Assembly (NCBI GenBank): GCA_002189035.1
Contig: NEEC01000013.1
Coordinates: 1,922,001-1,986,000, forward strand
Reading direction: 5' to 3'
DNA length: 64,000 bases
DNA from: Utricularia gibba
Taxonomy: Eukaryota > Plantae > Magnoliophyta
The notes under the pieces were generated by a model. The model made no database searches. It saw nothing but the letters and a program-made list of their open reading frames with translations, and was not told where the DNA came from. The position numbers and the translations under genes are program-made. Positions 3,900-17,527 of the stretch are shown in pieces (within the stretch, counting starts at the first letter, position 1; the number at the start of each line of letters is the position of its first letter).

Positions 3900-4343
3900 T
3901 GGAATTGTGAATGGTCTCTGAACATCTTCCGCTCTTCTTCAGCCAAGCGATTAAGTAGATAAGATGGTGATATCAGTGGACGAGAATCCATAACTTGTTA
4001 CATGCAAATCAGACAGATATAACACATGTGGCAACCAAGTTCCCCATTTGCACGAAGATATTTTTGTCCCATTTCATCATCAAAACACTAACCTTCAGGT
4101 AACCCCGCTGCGCAAAATAACCTGCGCTCTCACCAAAATCTTACATGCTCCAAGTAGCATGTCGCTCTTCTTGCAGAATCAGGACAGCATTGTCCAAATA
4201 TCGCAAGAACAGGCCAAGAAAAGGAACAACAGTTGCACCAACAGTCACCCTTCTCATCTGAATCTGAATACAAAGCAGCATCAGGATGAATCAGCAAATG
4301 CGATCTGATGATGAAAACATCAAGATCGCTAGTTGATGCTTAA

Positions 4344-4429
4344 TGGGCCACACAATAACAGTTCATGGGCCGTAAACTGCAGATTCGGATAGCCCAATCC
4401 AGCCGTAACCCAAATATCTTTATTGGGCT
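4344..4429. promoter_or_regulatory. Cluster of four site II (TGGGCY, TCP-binding) elements upstream of the PGM-like gene
   Basis: TGGGCC 4344 and 4366, AGCCCA 4391, TGGGCT 4424, about 450-530 bp upstream of the ATG at 3899. Confidence 0.45.
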
Positions 4430-5281
4430 TTCTCCAAATCCGTAAACCTTTCCAATGTGAATATTTCTCACAATTAAAAAAATTTCATAAAATCAAATAA
4501 TCATAATTTACCTATTAAACACACAATCACAAATTAAGCTCTATGTTATAATTTATTTAAATTTCAAATAATTTACCAAATGTAATGACCTACTCTAAAA
4601 AAAAAATTGCTCATACAAAATTAAAGAATATATTTCTATATAAATTGTTTAATTATCCCATTTTTAATTGATAAGATTCGTCTAAAATCCTTAAACTTAT
4701 TTTTAGTTTGGTCTTTCCACTCCCTTTGGAAATTATGCATCCTCTATGAGGTTTGCCCCATCATTGATTATAAATTCGGGTTTAATTCTGATATAAAATA
4801 TATCAAAATAAATGATTTTTTTTTCAAGTATTTTTTTGATAAAAAATGTTAATAAACTATAAAATAAAAATTTTAAAAAATGAATTTCTCTTTCATCCTA
4901 AAAAAATATTTTTAAAAGAATAAAACCAAATATATCCTAATTTAATCAATTTTTAAGGTACGAGGGATGAAATTGCTAGCTTGAACATGATCTGCATCTG
5001 GAATATGACTAATTAGGATATGGCCCCCACAGTTTTGCAGGTTTAGGTAAATGGTCCCCTACTAATGATAAATTACTCAGTGGAACCCCAAATGTGAATC
5101 ATTTTCAAGTATGCAAAAACGAGAGCCTCTTATTGCTGTAAAATTAAAAAACACATCCACAAAGAAATAGAAATTCGAAATTTCACCCACTCCCCTATCA
5201 GGAATTCACCGCAGATCCAATCTGTATCAAGGACCTTCAGATTCCGGCGCCCGGCGCGCGTCGGGGCTGTGCAAATTTCGG

Positions 5282-7005
5282 TCAGTTCCTCGCGGAAGAG
5301 GCGTCGCTCATTGCCCAGGCGGTGGTGGAGATCAGTGGCCGAGAATGCCAACCCAACATCAAGCACCCGTTGTTCTCCTCTACACTGTATCCGTCGCCGC
5401 CGAAGACGGCGAGGAGCATAATCGCTTGTTTGTAGACATTGGAGCCCAGATGAACGGGTTGGAATCCGGCGGAATTGAAGCGGTTTCTCCATTGTATCAA
5501 CGACTCGTGTCTCTCAATTCGATCGGCGCCTTCACAAGCGACGACATTGAAAATCTGCTGCCCTAAATACGCCTCGCTCATCATCTTATTCTTACGGCTG
5601 AGCGCCACATCGGGGCCGCCGCCACCGTCGCAGGTTTCAAGAGAATCGAAGAGGGTGGAGTAGTAGTGCAGAGCTTCGGTGAAGCGGTCCAAGAAACAGC
5701 TACTGTTGTGGTTGGCCTCCTGCTCAACAACCGTCAAAATCTCCGGCTTCACTTCCCGGATGACTCGCAGAACCTTGTCGATCGCTCCAGGCTTCGCAAG
5801 CAATTGATGCAACTCGAAAATGGAGTTTACAGCTACAGTTTCATCTTCTCTGATATCCAACAGAAGGGCATCCAGATCAGCTAATGAATTCGCTACAAAA
5901 CCTCTGTATTCGAACTGAACATTGATGGTTTTGGCGAACTGGGCTAATCTGAATCCAACTTCGTGCAAATAATCGTTGTCATCCGGCGAGGGAGGACCGA
6001 TTCCGGTGAGACGGAAAGTGGGGGACCGCCCTGTCTGAAAGCTAGCGCTTGAAGAAGCGCTGGCCATTGCATCCCCTGCTTCATACTGAAATCAATGACA
6101 CGGACATGGCTTTTGCCTGCAAAAGCTTCAAGAATTGCTTGATTCGCAGTGAAATGAGCAAATTTGAGATATGGGCAAGTTTCGTAGAAGTGCATCTGCA
6201 ACATATCGGTGAAATGATAGTCCTGAGGCTGATGGTTCATGGGGTAGATTCTGTAAATTCTTCTAGCCAAAGCTTCTGCGAAATATGTGGCCACTTTTCG
6301 CATAGCTCCAGTTTGAGAAACGGCAAAGAAAGCGATGTTCTTCACCAACGCTTCTGCTAATTTGAAATTCTCCTCCTGCACAGCTTCTGCACACGCCATT
6401 AAAGTATGGACGAGCCTGATTCCATTTTCCTGAGAATCAATCAGGATCGACCGCCGGGGCGGCGAGGGCTCACCCCGCAACGTTTTCGCTTTCTTCGCCG
6501 GCGGCTGATGCTGATTCCTGCTCTCCGGCGAAGGTTGGTGAAACTGGGTATTAGCAAAAACAGCTTTTCCGGGTATAGCGATGAGATCCGACCCAAAATC
6601 AAGGTCAGCCGCTGCCAACCCCCGGTTGCTATCAGCGGCGGAAGATTCAAGAAAAAGATCCAGAGAGGAGTCGAAGTCGAGTTCCGGCAAAGGGCCGAGC
6701 CCAGAAAGCATATACTCAAGCCAGGAAGATAGATCCGAGGGATTACAATGAAGAGTATCATCCATAGAACCGAGCTGCGAATACCCACCAGCCGCGGCGT
6801 CCCCCATGGCCGCTTCAATCTGATGAATCTTCTGAGCCACATCCGCCATGTCCGATGCCCTGACCTTATACCCCAACACCCCGAAAAGCTCATCATCAAT
6901 CCCTCCCTCCTCCAACCCCCGCTGCCTCATCCTACCTTCATCCATGAAAGAAGAACTCCCAGAACCAGAAAAATTATCCTCGGAAACCAGATTCTCCCTC
7001 TTCAT
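5282..7005 (-). CDS. GAI: DELLA protein (GAI/RGA-like GRAS), intronless, split by a 1-bp deletion at G5 6020-6024
   Basis: [75 protein letters not shown] in ORF 5944-7005; frame continues in ORF 5282-6067 ([55 protein letters not shown]). One extra G restores GGPPTFRLTG. Confidence 0.93.
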
Positions 7006-7925
7006 CGCCCCTCCTCGGAACCAATAAAAAACGAAAACAGGATGAAATGGAATCAGAGCATTGGGTTAACGTGCTTAGGTATTCACAAAGTTACCCTCCG
7101 TCTCCGGGATTCCTCTGTTTGAGAAAGTGAGAGAAGATGGGGCACCGAGGGGTCAGTGCGTGGGCATCGCAGAGAAGAGTGTGCTGTTGGCGGGGCGGGG
7201 AAAGAGGTAATAATTACTAATGGTGGTACGAATCTATACAAAGAAAATTATCCACACCAAATTCAAGAACACAATATATTTATTTAATAAATAAACATGA
7301 AAAATAATATAAAATCATTGTACTTCTTGGTATTTTAAATACCATTATCTCACACAAATTATTAATTAATAATAAATTGCGCTATCAACAGTTTTATAAA
7401 GGTGAATAAGGAGTTTTTTGGTATTTTAGAGTTTATGGGGCGTGGAGGGAGGACACTTGCCAAAGCGCACAGATCGATGATAACGAGATTTCAGTTTCGG
7501 AACTGCCCCAGCAACAGGGGACAAATTGACCAAAGGACCCCCGCCAACCGCCGTCAACATCCCTCCGCTACCTCCGTTATTGATACTGCCCAACAGTTAA
7601 CGCCGTTGCACTCCCCGTCCGTTAGTGTGACGACTACCCTTTTTTATTAGAAATAAGAAATAAATAAATTATCCTTAAGTTAAATTATTAAATATATTAA
7701 TTAATTATATAAATCATATTCATTGATATCTCATAAATTATAATTTATCATATACTGAATATTCAATTCATCTTAATAGTTTATTATTTTATTTATTCCA
7801 AAAAATCCCACTTATTTCATGTTATTTAATATCAAAATAAGGGAAAAAAACTAAAATCACCATAAAGACTTTCCTAAACCTATTTAGAAAAATGACCAAA
7901 CTGCATTTATCTCTAATATACTATA

Positions 7926-10383: not shown

Positions 10384-11388
10384 TTAGACTGTAGCCGCAG
10401 CGACTTCCGGGCCGTCCCAGTCAGCAGCAGACTTCTTCTCCATCATCATATGGCGTAGCACTCAGTAAGTACCCTGGATTCAATACCAGTTTATAAAATC
10501 AAGTAGATGATCCCTGAATGATCATAGCAGACGAGGGATGGTAGCTCTCCTTGCGTTTCTCCAGGAATCGGGCCATGAAAGCTTCACGGCCCCTGAGAGA
10601 AACGGCTGGCGGAACATTCGTGGAATCAATGGAGACGGGCTCGGTGGCCGGAGTTTGGAACACGGACACGGCACGACTTTTAGAGCTTCATTTCCAAGCC
10701 TTACATATGATCGGGCGTGACTTAAACTCCATGAAATTTGAAAAACTACAGAGAGACGAATGCTTGTGAAAAAATTAAGCTCACGGTGGAGAGAGATCTG
10801 TCTATCTGACTTATCCGGCGTGATTTCATCGTAAACGGTCATGGCTCCACCGTAGAATATGGTTAATTAAACATCTACTTTATATTCGTTCCCTTATTCT
10901 TCTTCAGGCAGTAACATATCGGAAGAAATCAGATTCATCCTCTTTGAAAAGTTTTATTTTTACACTTCACGCTTGTTCTGTTCCTCAGATTCCACAGATG
11001 AAAACCGGAGGGCCAAAGGTTGTTCTGAAACAGAGGCGGAGCTCCGGCCAAATCCTGCTGCGAACGGAGCAAACAGAAAATTGTCAACAAAACCCCATTT
11101 CCTCTACTACCCATCACACAAGATCGGTTTTTCTCAACTGGGCTTTAGCCAGACACACAGAATCAGAACAAATGAATTCTCAAGTTCAACAAAAAAAACC
11201 CACAACAGAAATCGCTGAAGTTAGCAGAATCGAAACCAGACGAGAAAAAGAAACCTCATTACATTGTGAAGTCAAGACAAACTTTCATTTCGAAAGCTTA
11301 CTAGAATCTTGAGAAGGTCCTTCGACGATCTCCTCATTGACTCTTCAACAGGCTTCTTGGAACTCAGACCCAAAAAGTCCCTCTCCGT
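10384..11388 (-). pseudogene. JAZ: JAZ/TIFY pseudogene (JAZ3/JAZ9-like)
   Basis: Exon 1 (ACG)ERDFLGLSSK = MERDFLGL start with ATG>ACG at 11386-11388; TIFY motif LTIFYGGAMTVYDEITPDK at 10810-10866; Jas motif REAFMARFLEKRKE at 10545-10590; last exon V-L-S-A-T-P-Y with a 4-bp TACT duplication (~10463-10470); four in-frame TAA stops and several frameshifts. Confidence 0.9.
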
Positions 11389-11985
11389 GTATCAGAAAAC
11401 CCGAAGGGGTGGTAGCTGGCGGAAATAAAAATAAAATATTATAAAAAATCATAAATTATTAATAATTGATTAAAACCAATATTTTTGAATATGATGTATA
11501 ATTATGTTTAACTTATGTATGTCCATCCGACTCATCGTTTCCTTAATTTCAATACTTAGAAAAACGATGCATAAAATAACACAGAATGAAGAAGAAACGC
11601 TTGTCTCATGTGTTATTAGAAAAAAAAAGTAGGTTTTACGGAACTACTTTTTTTAATTTTTTTTAAAAATGATGATATATGCATTATTTTACTATAAAAT
11701 ACGTCAGAATACAAATCATTCACATGGTGATGGTGCTTCACGCACAACGAGACAACGAGTGGAGCTTAGAGAGAGGGAACCAAAGAGGAAGAAAAAGAGA
11801 AGTTCCATCAATTTTGAACTGGAAACAGCTTCTCTGGCAGAACACCGATTCTGAAAATCGTCTTCAGTTTCGTTGATTCTTGGTGCTGATAGTCGTTGAT
11901 ACAGATTCCTTGTTCCTTACAATGGCGCCGGTTTTGGGAGGATTTTTATGCGAGTTATAACGGCAACTGAGCAGATCGGGCGGGG

Positions 11986-14897
11986 ATGACGGAGACTTCC
12001 GGAGACGGAAGCGTTGATGCGCCAGCGGAGGTTGTTTCTCGTGACACTGGCGGGAATGCAGTGGGTTTGGGACCGACGCTCACGGTGTCGGCGTCGTTCA
12101 AGGGCTCCGCATCACGGCGGAGGTCGTTAGCGCGACCTACCGTTGATGCGGATGAGTTTTTAAGCTCGCTCCATGGCTCGGATCCGGTGAGGCTGGAGCT
12201 TAATCGACTGGAGAACGAAGTAAGAGGTGAGTATCTCTGGTTCTGGATCCACGGGATTTGTTTTCTGATTTGAATTTGAGACGGCGCCGTTCGGATTCTT
12301 GGCTTGAACTTGTGTATTTCGTCGAACGCACAGCACAATGAGAATGAATTGAGTGTTTTCTCTGTAGATAAGGAGCGGGAATTGGGAGAAGCTTATTCAC
12401 AGATCAAGGCGCTGAAGCTCTCTGAGAGGCTTCGAGAAAAAGCCGTTGAAGAGGTTCTTATTTAGATTACTTAGTATATTTATGATGAGTGTATCAGGAG
12501 AAGTTTGTCATAGCAGATGAAAGAATTGCCGGAATCTATTACAAAATCTGCGTTGGTGTTAGTGCATTCAGATAATCTTAAACGCCGCTGAGCCCTGAGA
12601 CCTTTCATTTTGTTTTAGTTGACTGATGAGTTGTCGAAGGTGGATGAGAAACATAAATTAACGGAGTCTGTTCTTCAGAGCAAGGTACTGTGTATTCTTT
12701 TTCCATTATGATCTCCGTATCATTATTTTGTACATTCTGTAGATCTACTTGCCCTATAATTTTGTTTTTTTTTTCAGAATCTTGAGATTAAAAAACTTAA
12801 TGATGAAAAGAAGGCCTCAATGGCAGCCCAGTTTGCTGCCGAGGCTACACTTCGGCGCGTTCATGCTGCCCAAAAGGATGATGATATGCCCCAATTGAAG
12901 CCATTCTGGCTCCATTGGAAGCCGAACTTAAACTCTCTCGACAGGAGGTTTGTGCATTTAGCAACTCGCTCTGATGTTAATCCGCTTCATTTATGATAAT
13001 GTTACTGAACCTATCTGTATTTTCCACTTAGATTTCAAAGCTACAAGAGGACAACAAAGCATTGGATCGGTTGACAAAATCAAAGGAAGCTGCTCTACTT
13101 GATGCGGAGAGAACTGTACAAATAGCAATGGCAAAAGCATCAATGGTGGATGATCTGCAAAACAAGAACCAAGAATTAATGAAGCAGATTGAAATTTGCC
13201 AGGTATAATGGACACCTGTGGCTGCAAGTTTTTGTGACACTATTCAACACAGTTAATATTTTTTTCTTTGCCATTTGGATGTTTTCCTATTGTATCAGGA
13301 AGAAAATAAGATAATGGATAAAATGCATAGACAAAAGGTGGCTGATATTGAAAAGCTTACCCAAACTGTGCGTGAACTTGAAGAGGCCGTGCTCGCTGGT
13401 GGGGCAGCTGCGAATGCAGTCCGTGACTATCAGAGAAAAGTTCAGGAGATGAACGTATTAATACATTACCCAATGATTTCACACGTAACTTCTGATGTTA
13501 ATCTTAAGTTGATTGCCTTCACTCATTATGTTTTCAGGAAGAAAGGAAAACTCTTGACAGGGAGCTGGCTCGAGCTAAGGTGACTGCAAATAGGGTTGCA
13601 ACTGTTGTAGCTAATGAATGGAAAGATGCTAATGACAAAGTAATGCCCGTGAAACAGTGGCTGGAAGAGAGAAGGTTCTTGCAGGTGTAGTGAATCCCTT
13701 TCACTTGCCAATGAATATTTGTAGTTGTTAAATATTGGCGAGTTGGATAATCCCAGCTTATCTTTATTTCTACTTCACAGGGCGAAATGCAGCAACTCAA
13801 GGATAAGCTTTCTGTAGCAGAGAGAACTGCTAAATCAGAAGCCCAGTTAAAAGTAAATGGCTTCAACATATTGATTCTGGGTAATTTTTTAGAAACATGT
13901 CATTGGGATCACATTACAATTTCTCATCTTTCAGGAAAAGTTTCAGTTACGTCTGAAGGTTCTTGAGGAAACGTTGAGATCGCCAAATGTGGCACCCCGT
14001 GGTGCTTCGGAACCTAGGAGCTCAAGTAATGGTTTAGCACGCCGCCAGTCACTTGGTGGAGCTGAAAATATCACCAAATTAGCCTCCAGTTTCATTCTGC
14101 CTAAAAGACCCCCATCGTTTCAGAGTAAATCTTATGGAAGCAGTTCAGTTTTGAAACATGCAAAGGGAGCATCGAAGTCCTTTGATGGTGGATCACGACC
14201 TGTGGACAGGAATAAAGTTCTCTTGAATGGGTTAGGTCCAAGTTTCAAGCAAGTTCAGTCATCTGAAGATGCTAAGCAAATTGACGAGCCTACTAGTACC
14301 ACATGTGGAAAAGCTCCAGCAGAAAACACGAGCGACATACAAATTGAAGCTGTTACTGAGGACACAGTGCCTGGTGTATTGTATGATCTATTGCAGAAAG
14401 AGGTGGTTACGTTGAGAAAAGCTGGCCAGGAAAAGGATCAAAGTCTCAAGGACAAGGATGATGCAATTGAGGTTAGATCATTATGCCCTCGAATTTTTTG
14501 TTGAACATGAGTCAAGTGTTTCCTGTCCACTACTTTGATCAGATATTAGCAAAAAAAGTGGACACTTTGACCCGGGCAATGGAAACTGAAGCCAAGAAGA
14601 TGAGAAGAGAGGTAGCTGCCATGGAGAAGGAGGTTGCAGCGATGCGTGTGGAGAAGGAGCATGACACCAAAGCCAAGAGACTGGTGCATTCGAGGAGCTC
14701 TAACAGTTCACAGTTTCTCTCTGCAAGGTATGGTTCCCTATTCTCATACATCTCAACACAAAAATATATATATTGCTGACATTTTATCGATGCACAACTG
14801 TATGGCCTTTCCTTACGCACAAGCATGCGTTCACAGTAATGCAATGTTGCCCTGCAGGATCTTATCAAGAAGTGGGATGACCCGCAGCACACAATAA
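11986..14897 (+). CDS. MAP70: Microtubule-associated protein 70, multi-exon; 1-bp deletion at C4 12889-12892
   Basis: LHGSDPVRLELNRLENEVR, EATLRRVHAAQKDDDMP(P)IEAILAPLEAELK, DDLQNKNQELMKQIEICQ, AVRDYQRK, VANEWKDANDKVMPVKQWLEER, LYDLLQKEV..LRK, EAKKMRREVAAMEKEV; GT-AG introns. Confidence 0.95.
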
Positions 14898-15524
14898 CAG
14901 AACATTTGTATCCGGGTTCCTTTTCATCTAATCCAGGTTTCATTATCCACCGTATGTCTGCTGGCATGCCCATGCCAATATCTCTTTGGTGGGATGAAAG
15001 TATACGGTGGAAACGATCAATCATCATGTGTGTTTATTTTACCCTGAAATCAAGCTGCTCATTCAGTAGATTTGTATTGCTGTGGGTAGCAATTAAATTC
15101 CCTCTATGTATAGGTAACTTGGTAGCTTTTGGTATGACTCGTTTGGGATTGTTGTACGGGTCTTCATTGTTAACGTCGTTTTCATGTTCCTTGGTTTCAT
15201 CTTCTGCCACTTGAATTTATTGGATGAAGATGTTTGTCTCTCTCCGTGTAGTGTCTCTTGGACTGGAGTCTTTATGCCTGAATGCTGCTTTCAACTTTGT
15301 CTCCATTAGTGTTGTTAGTGCTATTGTTTTGTAATTGGAGAAAGGGATTTTTCAACTAGCATATGAATGCAAGGATCCGTCATGTCGTTTAGGTCATCTT
15401 CTGCAGGATTCAGATTCGCACGGCGCATTTCACCCAGTGTAACTGTGAGTATTCACAGAGAGGCATATGGGAGCAGAAAAGATTTACGAAATGATGGTAC
15501 CATATGAATTTGTACAAGGAAATC

Positions 15525-17527
15525 TCAAGGCAGAGGGAAGCTCAAAATGTTGTTCTCGCAGCTACTGCATAAAAAAATGGCTGGAATCTCTTCAGTCTGA
15601 GGAATATTTACACACCTTGTGTGCTGCTGAACTTGGCAGATATCACACGACACCATTCTCTCCCCATCATTGTCTCTAGTTCCACAAACACAGTCCACTG
15701 TCATCAGGAGCTCGCCTTCGCACACAGGCTGCCCAGTTGCTTTCACCTCAAACACAACTCTGCTTCCCGGTTTCAGTGCTTTGAACACCAAGTCTGATCC
15801 TTTACACCTTATGTTCCTCGGTGAATCTGCCTTGAAGCCCTTCAGCCCCATGTAAGTCTCTCTGAACACCCTCTCTGCTTCAGTTTTCAACTCATCAAAA
15901 ACAGAGGAGTTCCTCAGGATCAAGCAATGGTATGGAGTTGCAACCTCCTCCTGCTCTGATCCATCATCCTTCTTCACCACAATGGAGCAATACATCTTCC
16001 ATTTGTCAGATTTGTTCCCAGGTACCTCCTCCCCACCGTAGTCTTTATACAGATGCTTCGAATCAAGGATGATCCTAGATGCCAGGGGGAGAGTGGCTAA
16101 GGCTCCAGCTTTGGTGTCTCTGAAAACGTGTGTATACACATGGTTAATGTCCCTCATGAGCTGAGCCCAAGAGACCTTCAGCTGATGAGGCCTCAGTGCT
16201 GGTTCATAGTTCGTGGATGGCTCTTCCAGTGACAGTGTTTGGGAGATATCTTCCACACAATACTCCAGCACTTTGGTCACAGGATTCACACATCTACGGA
16301 TGAAATACTTGCCAACCAAGTGGTTTCCCAAGGACTTGAGCACAAAGTCGAGCAGACCCGTGTCTCCAATGTATGCCCGTGCCTGGTCTCGTATATGCTG
16401 CCTAGAAACCCAATGTGTTTCAGCTGTTTTCAGTGATTCAACTATCACATGAATCGCCATTTCGACGCGCTTCGAAGACCATCTGCAGGATGAATCAGAC
16501 ATGATCCCTGGATAGGGAGAAGAGATTTTGGACTCCTTTGGAATCCTGGACTTGAGTTCCAGCATGAACAGGAAGAGTTGGCCTATGGTTACCAGAGAAT
16601 GCCCAGATAAAAGCTGGAGTTTCTTCAGTATCACTTGTGTCATTTCATTTGGACTGCTCGTGTGTGCAATCAGGCTGATAGGAATGCTCTGTATTGCTCT
16701 CACTGCATTCCCATATGACTCTTCATCCACGCCGTAGCTCCCCCGGCCGAGCGTGTAGCTCCACTGCGAGAACCATGGCTTGCCATAGGCTACACCATGA
16801 AGCAGCCTGAGTTCCATGCCTCTCTTCCTAGAGACGTCTCTCAAGCTCACCTTCCTGGAGTTCTCATTGCATTAAAACACTGGACTCAGGATGATTCATT
16901 TCAAGTTTTATGATATTCGAACCTCGCTCCGAGCCCGACGCAGAGACGATCCCAGAACTCCATGATCTCGTAGCCTGCCAAGAGTGAGCCAGTCTCTAAA
17001 CCTCCAATGTAGAGCAAATGACCATAGCCATTGGAATGGAACACACCATGGAGGCTATGCTTCTCCCTCTGCAACTCAACCAGTGCACAGTATTCCTCCG
17101 AGTCTGCTCTCAATGGCAGCAGAAAATGGTACCTCTTGTTGCAGACCAAGTGATGCCCCCAGCCTGAACTACATTTCAACATCACCAAGAAGAGAAAACA
17201 CAACACACAGAATCAAAGTGCCATGTTACTATTACCTATATATTGACAGTACTTGCACCGGAGTTCCATCGAAAACTCCTCCACCGGCTCCTCCACCACA
17301 AACAGAAGCAGATGCAGCAGCGGTTGGCGATGAACTTCCAGGTGAAATGACCAACTTGGCATGGTTCCACTGCGATCCTCTTGGCCAAACTCCAAAAGGG
17401 CTCTCACGTTTTCCTGAAAAGAACCACAGAAATCAACAGGGTACCCCTTCTCCCCAAAGAGCTTGAATTTGTACACCCTTTCGCCCCTTCTCCTCTTCCT
17501 GCACCCATTCACTTCCATATGGGGCAT
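15525..17527 (-). CDS. MS1: MALE STERILITY 1-like PHD finger protein, 3 exons
   Basis: CRKRRRGERVYKFKLFGE, WSFHLEVHR, LLLFVVEEP, CKYCQYIG|WGHHLVCNKRYHF, LHGVFHSNGYGHLL, MELRLLHGVAYGKPWF, GDTGLLDFVLKSLGN, C-terminal PHD DCVCGTRDNDGERMVSCDIC..HTRC...FLCSSC. Confidence 0.88.

Follow-up and report, generated by a model that had tools for sequence, protein, structure and literature searches.

Structure of the locus

The window is the whole stretch of Utricularia gibba DNA that was analysed, 64 kb in length. Its minus strand carries an ERDFLGL N-terminus, a TIFY motif and a Jas core between positions 11388 and 10421, in the canonical order. The features that we assign to this relic, together with the spacer that adjoins it, are as follows.

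11389-11985, no strand assigned: AT-rich spacer of 597 bp, once the promoter region, shared with a MAP70 gene in head-to-head orientation
11388-11302, minus strand: exon 1 relic, ERDFLGL N-terminus, reading TERDFLGLSSKKPVE... and then VNEEIVEGPSQDS in the next frame
11301-11058, minus strand: intron 1, 244 nt, with GTAAGC donor at 11301-11296, pyrimidine tract and CAG acceptor
11057-10971, minus strand: exon 2 relic, reading (T)GFGRSSASVSEQPLALRFSSVESEEQNK, open, fitting the shifted end of exon 1 and exon 3 in phase
10970-10878, minus strand: intron 2, 93 nt, with GTGAAG donor and AAG acceptor, placed by phase
10877-10810, minus strand: exon 3, first half of the TIFY domain, LTIFYGGAMTVYDEITPDK
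10809-10721, minus strand: intron 3, 89 nt, inside the TIFY domain, beginning TC instead of GT and ending TTTAAG
10720-10545, minus strand: exon 4, second half of the TIFY domain (SRPIICKA), linker, and N-terminal part of Jas, RGREAFMARFLEKRKE
10544-10474, minus strand: Jas intron, 71 nt, following KRKE+AG, with the CAG acceptor intact
10473-10421, minus strand: exon 5, reading (R)V + LSATPYDDGEEVCC and a stop, the X5PY end of Jas, behind a duplication

The model has five exons and four introns of 71-244 nt, and by calculation its phases are consistent. The combined exon length is divisible by three (465 nt, or 155 codons) only if one base is added to exon 1 and a 4-nt duplication is subtracted from exon 5. 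The ancestral stop is the TGA at 10423-10421. The original prediction had taken the gene to end at 10384, which is instead the stop of an out-of-frame ORF. For intron 2 the acceptor could equally well lie 3 nt beyond the one given. No Pfam model matches exon 2, and its assignment is deduced from phase arithmetic and position. The placing of exon 2 and of a frameshift in exon 1 also leans on what we take to be the usual form of JAZ3-type N-termini.

Intron 3 splits the TIFY domain directly after PDK. The Jas intron lies at the conserved position and, with a TACT duplication discounted, leaves a 7-residue X5PY end (VLSATPY); the same intron position and 7-residue end have been described for JAZ genes (PMC3355530). 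All four introns are kept at their expected positions, which identifies the relic as an unprocessed pseudogene and not a retrocopy.

Neighbouring genes

The spacer at 11389-11985 contains no G-box (CACGTG). Beyond it lies the MAP70 gene (11986-15214, plus strand), with its ATG at 11986 and oriented head-to-head with the relic, followed by a PHD-finger gene of the MS1/MMD1 type (15525-17527, minus strand) with an At1g33420-like ubiquitin-like domain. The flanks of the relic show no terminal inverted or direct repeats, and the relic matches no Rfam family.

On the other side a DELLA gene lies 3.4 kb downstream of the relic. Between the two, the ten longest ORFs at 7.1-10.4 kb match no other Pfam family, and nothing recognizable was found. 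Lamiales DELLAs share 60-68% of their residues with this DELLA, that of Genlisea aurea the most, and the block of DELLA and phosphoglucomutase (PGM) is collinear with G. aurea contig KE533563.1. That contig stops at the 5' end of DELLA, so that the JAZ side is not covered. At the DELLA loci of Erythranthe and Paulownia there is no JAZ/TIFY remnant within 10 kb.

The DELLA/GRAS gene (7005-5282, minus strand) is split into two overlapping ORFs, both halves being 65-75% identical to Lamiales DELLAs over the full length. The frame switches by a single base within 6019-6040, where there is a C5 run at 6024-6020. Either the frameshift is very recent or the assembly has a homopolymer error there. A non-coding block of ~90 nt (window positions 7490-7580), with TTGACGGC and TTTGGTCAATTTGTC, precedes the start of the DELLA by about 0.5 kb. 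The block is strongly conserved ahead of the DELLA orthologues of Erythranthe guttata (L001:5774-5851) and Paulownia fortunei (L002:7033-7131), and it is probably a conserved promoter element. Just downstream of DELLA a DUF7054 gene is present in G. aurea (L003:3787-4403), where it sits between DELLA and phosphoglucomutase, and in Erythranthe (L001:20771-21806). The corresponding interval of the window (3900-5280) has no match to DUF7054, and the gene has apparently been deleted there.

Relic motifs and assignment to the JAZ family

On six-frame translation of the whole 64-kb window TIFYGG, RFLEKRK and ERDFLGL each occur once. The three hallmark motifs all lie on the minus strand, collinear and spread over ~820 bp. 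Unique, on one strand and in canonical order, they are not a chance occurrence.

Sequence searches were made exon by exon. The TIFY motif named in the original prediction is well supported: LTIFYGGAMTVYDEITPDK at 10866-10810 matches Pfam tify (PF06200) over profile positions 7-25 of 34 with 31.3 bits and E = 1.3e-7, above the gathering score of 27 bits. The second half of the domain, SRPIICKA at 10720-10697, is read on exon 4 past the intron. The N-terminal part of Jas is RGREAFMARFLEKRKE at 10594-10547, including the predicted core ARFLEKRKE at 10573-10547. The Jas motif has the consensus SLX2FX2KRX2RX5PY (PF09425), and its X5PY end lies on the next exon. Exon 4 alone scored 15.6 bits (E = 0.014) with Jas_motif PF09425, for which the cut-off is 22.1. 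Alignment of RGREAFMARFLEKRKE with QARKASLARFLEKRKE of the JAZ9 (TIFY7) peptide in PDB 4RS9 (QARKASLARFLEKRKER) gave E = 0.21, and the core ARFLEKRKE is identical at 9/9 positions.

The sequence keeps the signature of the JAZ3/JAZ4/JAZ9 group (TIFY6/7), namely TERDFLGL at 11388-11365, LTIFYGG directly behind a stop, and ARFLEKRKE. The TIFY and Jas motif strings of this group were taken from Table S1 of PMC6829463, a census of 1065 JAZ proteins from 66 plants. ERDFLGL matches the walnut TIFY N-terminal motif MERDFLGLSKKTDS (PMC8903722). These matches support the stretch being a decayed gene of the TIFY family, namely a JAZ of the JAZ3/JAZ9 (TIFY6/7) type.

Lesions

The relic carries at least eight independent lesions, which are of several kinds, and exon 2 is the sole undamaged exon. 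At the start position (11388-11386) the sequence reads ACG (ACG GAG AGG GAC TTT TTG GGT CTG), and a TGA precedes it by two codons. Exon 1 can be joined to exon 2 in compatible phase only through a -1 shift near 11343-11341, and a frameshift would therefore lie there. In exon 3 a TAA (10869-10867) abuts LTIFYGG at the position where relatives, which read QLTIFYGG (PMC6829463 Table S1), have Q. The donor that should follow AAG (10812-10810) reads TC, its G having been lost.

Exon 4 contains an in-frame TGA (10690-10688), giving AWK*SS where walnut Motif3 has AGKGSS (PMC8903722). This exon was at first taken to be frameshifted, since GNEALKVV, read in another frame, resembled LAGN. That reading was dropped because a single GGA>TGA change is more parsimonious and AWK*SS matches AGKGSS. 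We infer the ancestral codons at both stops. In the degron RKASL has drifted to REAFM, which includes a K>E change in the RK pair. COI1 binding depends on a basic RK/RR pair in the degron, and in JAZ9 it requires this K (PMC3355530). AQA>SRP on the TIFY side is a further drift at otherwise conserved sites. The donor of the Jas intron has CT for GT (10544-10543). Finally exon 5 carries a TACT tandem duplication, TACTTACT at 10471-10464. The splice sites that are still intact comprise three acceptors and two of the four donors.

Much of this had been anticipated in the original prediction. The ATG>ACG change in a MERDFLGL-type start, the GTAAGC donor, the AG|CT after the Jas remnant and a last exon with the duplicated TACT were all found as described. 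The frameshift proposed for exon 1 is borne out as a deduction from phase. The TAA, the TGA of exon 4, the lost donor G, the drift of the degron and the second half of the TIFY domain were recognized in the present analysis.

These changes leave no canonical splice model that gives an intact protein with TIFY and Jas. The sequence from the TAA to TIFYGG contains no AG, and an in-frame ATG does not occur until 10842, past the motif; canonical splicing therefore cannot yield a protein with the TIFY motif. Where a functional gene would have an open frame from ATG to Jas and usable splice sites, we find ACG, two stops, two lost donors and two frameshifts. Where a functional degron would have the RK of JAZ9, the sequence is RE.

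Alternative explanations

We have considered whether the relic might still be transcribed and retain some role, either as a non-coding or siRNA transcript fired from the spacer shared with MAP70, or through a short protein from the ORF that starts at 10842. The head-to-head arrangement at a distance of 597 bp would allow a bidirectional promoter still to fire, and three acceptors and two donors survive. Yet the TIFY motif is missing from the 106-codon ORF that starts at 10842 (MTVYDEITPDK...), and over intron 3 and exon 4 this ORF is out of frame. In a large protein collection no protein of 63-200 aa contains it, and the relic matches no RNA family. A residual role is thus improbable.

It is slightly less probable again that the relic marks a consequential, lineage-specific event. 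This might take two forms. In one, the relic would be the recently killed orthologue of a JAZ gene that is intact in the DELLA-MAP70 interval of other Lentibulariaceae, and the loss would then tie in with the jasmonate-independent control of digestion reported in Utricularia. In the other, a transcribed pseudogene RNA would regulate an intact paralogue.

The broken appearance could in principle arise from errors of sequencing or assembly in an intact, functional JAZ gene. The adjoining DELLA, otherwise conserved over its full length, shifts frame once at its C5 run, and a frame switch at a homopolymer is typical of long-read error. Two lesions of the relic, in exon 1 and at the donor after AAG, are likewise losses of a single base. 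Against this, at least five lesions are not homopolymer indels: the T>C change at the start, two nonsense substitutions, the G>C change at the Jas donor, and the 4-nt tandem duplication. Moreover, conserved residues of TIFY and Jas have drifted too. Assembly error is unlikely and cannot account for everything seen, and we regard an intact gene here as very improbable. The earlier preference for decay over read error holds, most of the lesions being substitutions or the 4-nt duplication and not homopolymer indels. The frame switch in DELLA hints at some homopolymer errors in the assembly, which makes the two 1-nt lesions less secure than the others.

A gene fragment captured by a transposon, or a retroposed copy, can be set aside almost entirely, given five exons and four introns in order and flanks that are devoid of terminal inverted or direct repeats.

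Origin and fate of the relic

The reading that we favour is that of an unprocessed, duplication-derived pseudogene of the JAZ3/JAZ9 type, most likely a whole-genome duplicate, undergoing loss by fractionation. We consider this very probable. Utricularia gibba has undergone three whole-genome duplications, with massive fractionation afterwards (PMC4972453), and 11 JAZ genes have been reported in the species, three of them of the JAZ3/9 type (PMC6829463). A dead JAZ duplicate is what three rounds of whole-genome duplication followed by fractionation would predict, and we infer such an origin for the relic.

Judged by the published motif strings, the closest relative found is the U. gibba JAZ UGI.Scf00246.12491 (235 aa). 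The relic would likely be the whole-genome-duplication sister of that gene, or of the corresponding gene in a close relative. The ancestor may be pictured as a gene of five exons and ~155 codons. Its N-terminus would have been of the ERDFLGL form, one intron would have interrupted its TIFY/ZIM domain, and the conserved Jas intron its Jas motif. The relic can no longer give a JAZ protein, owing to the ACG start, frameshift, two nonsense codons, destruction of two of the four donors, the 4-nt duplication and drift of the degron.

The original prediction had seen here the loss of a jasmonate repressor. That was overstated, as the 11 genes include three of the JAZ3/9 type, the closest relative being one of these. 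With these numbers and three whole-genome duplications, what has been lost is a redundant duplicate and not the jasmonate-repressor function.

Searches for other relatives gave no further match. A word search with region 1-40 of the 114-aa TIFY ORF found none among proteins of 63-200 aa, a size range that excludes the paralogues of 235-244 aa; none of the stop-free pieces of the relic has the length needed to reach them. The 30-aa TIFY piece, which is too short for such a library, found none at E ≤ 0.001 among 1.8 billion proteins. Exact look-ups of the DELLA ORF of the window and of the 106-aa relic ORF returned no record, and neither of two metagenome scans, one with protein and one with a degenerate pattern for the TIFY exon, gave a match.

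In itself the relic matters little. It is a routine loss of a duplicate of which sister copies are reported to be intact, and JAZ pseudogenes have already been reported in the family censuses of other plants. It does provide a clean, unannotated case of fractionation in progress in a very compact genome. Given an alignment with paralogue DNA, it might help to date the duplication as a neutral-rate marker. Any count of JAZ genes for this species will vary with the treatment given to relics of this kind.

Comparison with related JAZ genes

The splice variants of JAZ genes include delta-PY forms, which retain the Jas intron, and delta-Jas forms, and these are stable dominant repressors. In a live gene, loss of the Jas donor would give a protein that ends soon after KRKE and lacks X5PY, and so would be delta-PY-like (PMC3355530). 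The splice variants come, however, from intact genes with an intact TIFY domain, whereas the upstream part of the relic has also been destroyed. A delta-PY-like repressor therefore cannot be made from it.

Compared with Arabidopsis JAZ9/TIFY7 (PDB 4RS9, 4YWC), the relic has an identical ARFLEKRKE and keeps the R of the RK pair. It differs in the K>E, S>F and L>M changes of the degron, and it is not translatable.

The similarity to UGI.Scf00246.12491 extends to rarer features. Counted by eye on the printed strings, 20/28 residues are identical in TIFY and 15/26 in Jas. Both have LTIFYGGA, DEITP and the rare IIC in place of the usual IML, and among the motif strings of Table S1 of PMC6829463 DEITP occurs in UGI.Scf00246.12491 alone. 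Each belongs to the JAZ3/9 type and has RFLEKRKER and an X5PY end. The deduced ancestral length of the relic (~155 codons) is shorter than that of UGI.Scf00246.12491. The U. gibba gene is annotated as intact, while the relic has a stop for Q, AQA>SRP and RKASL>REAFM.
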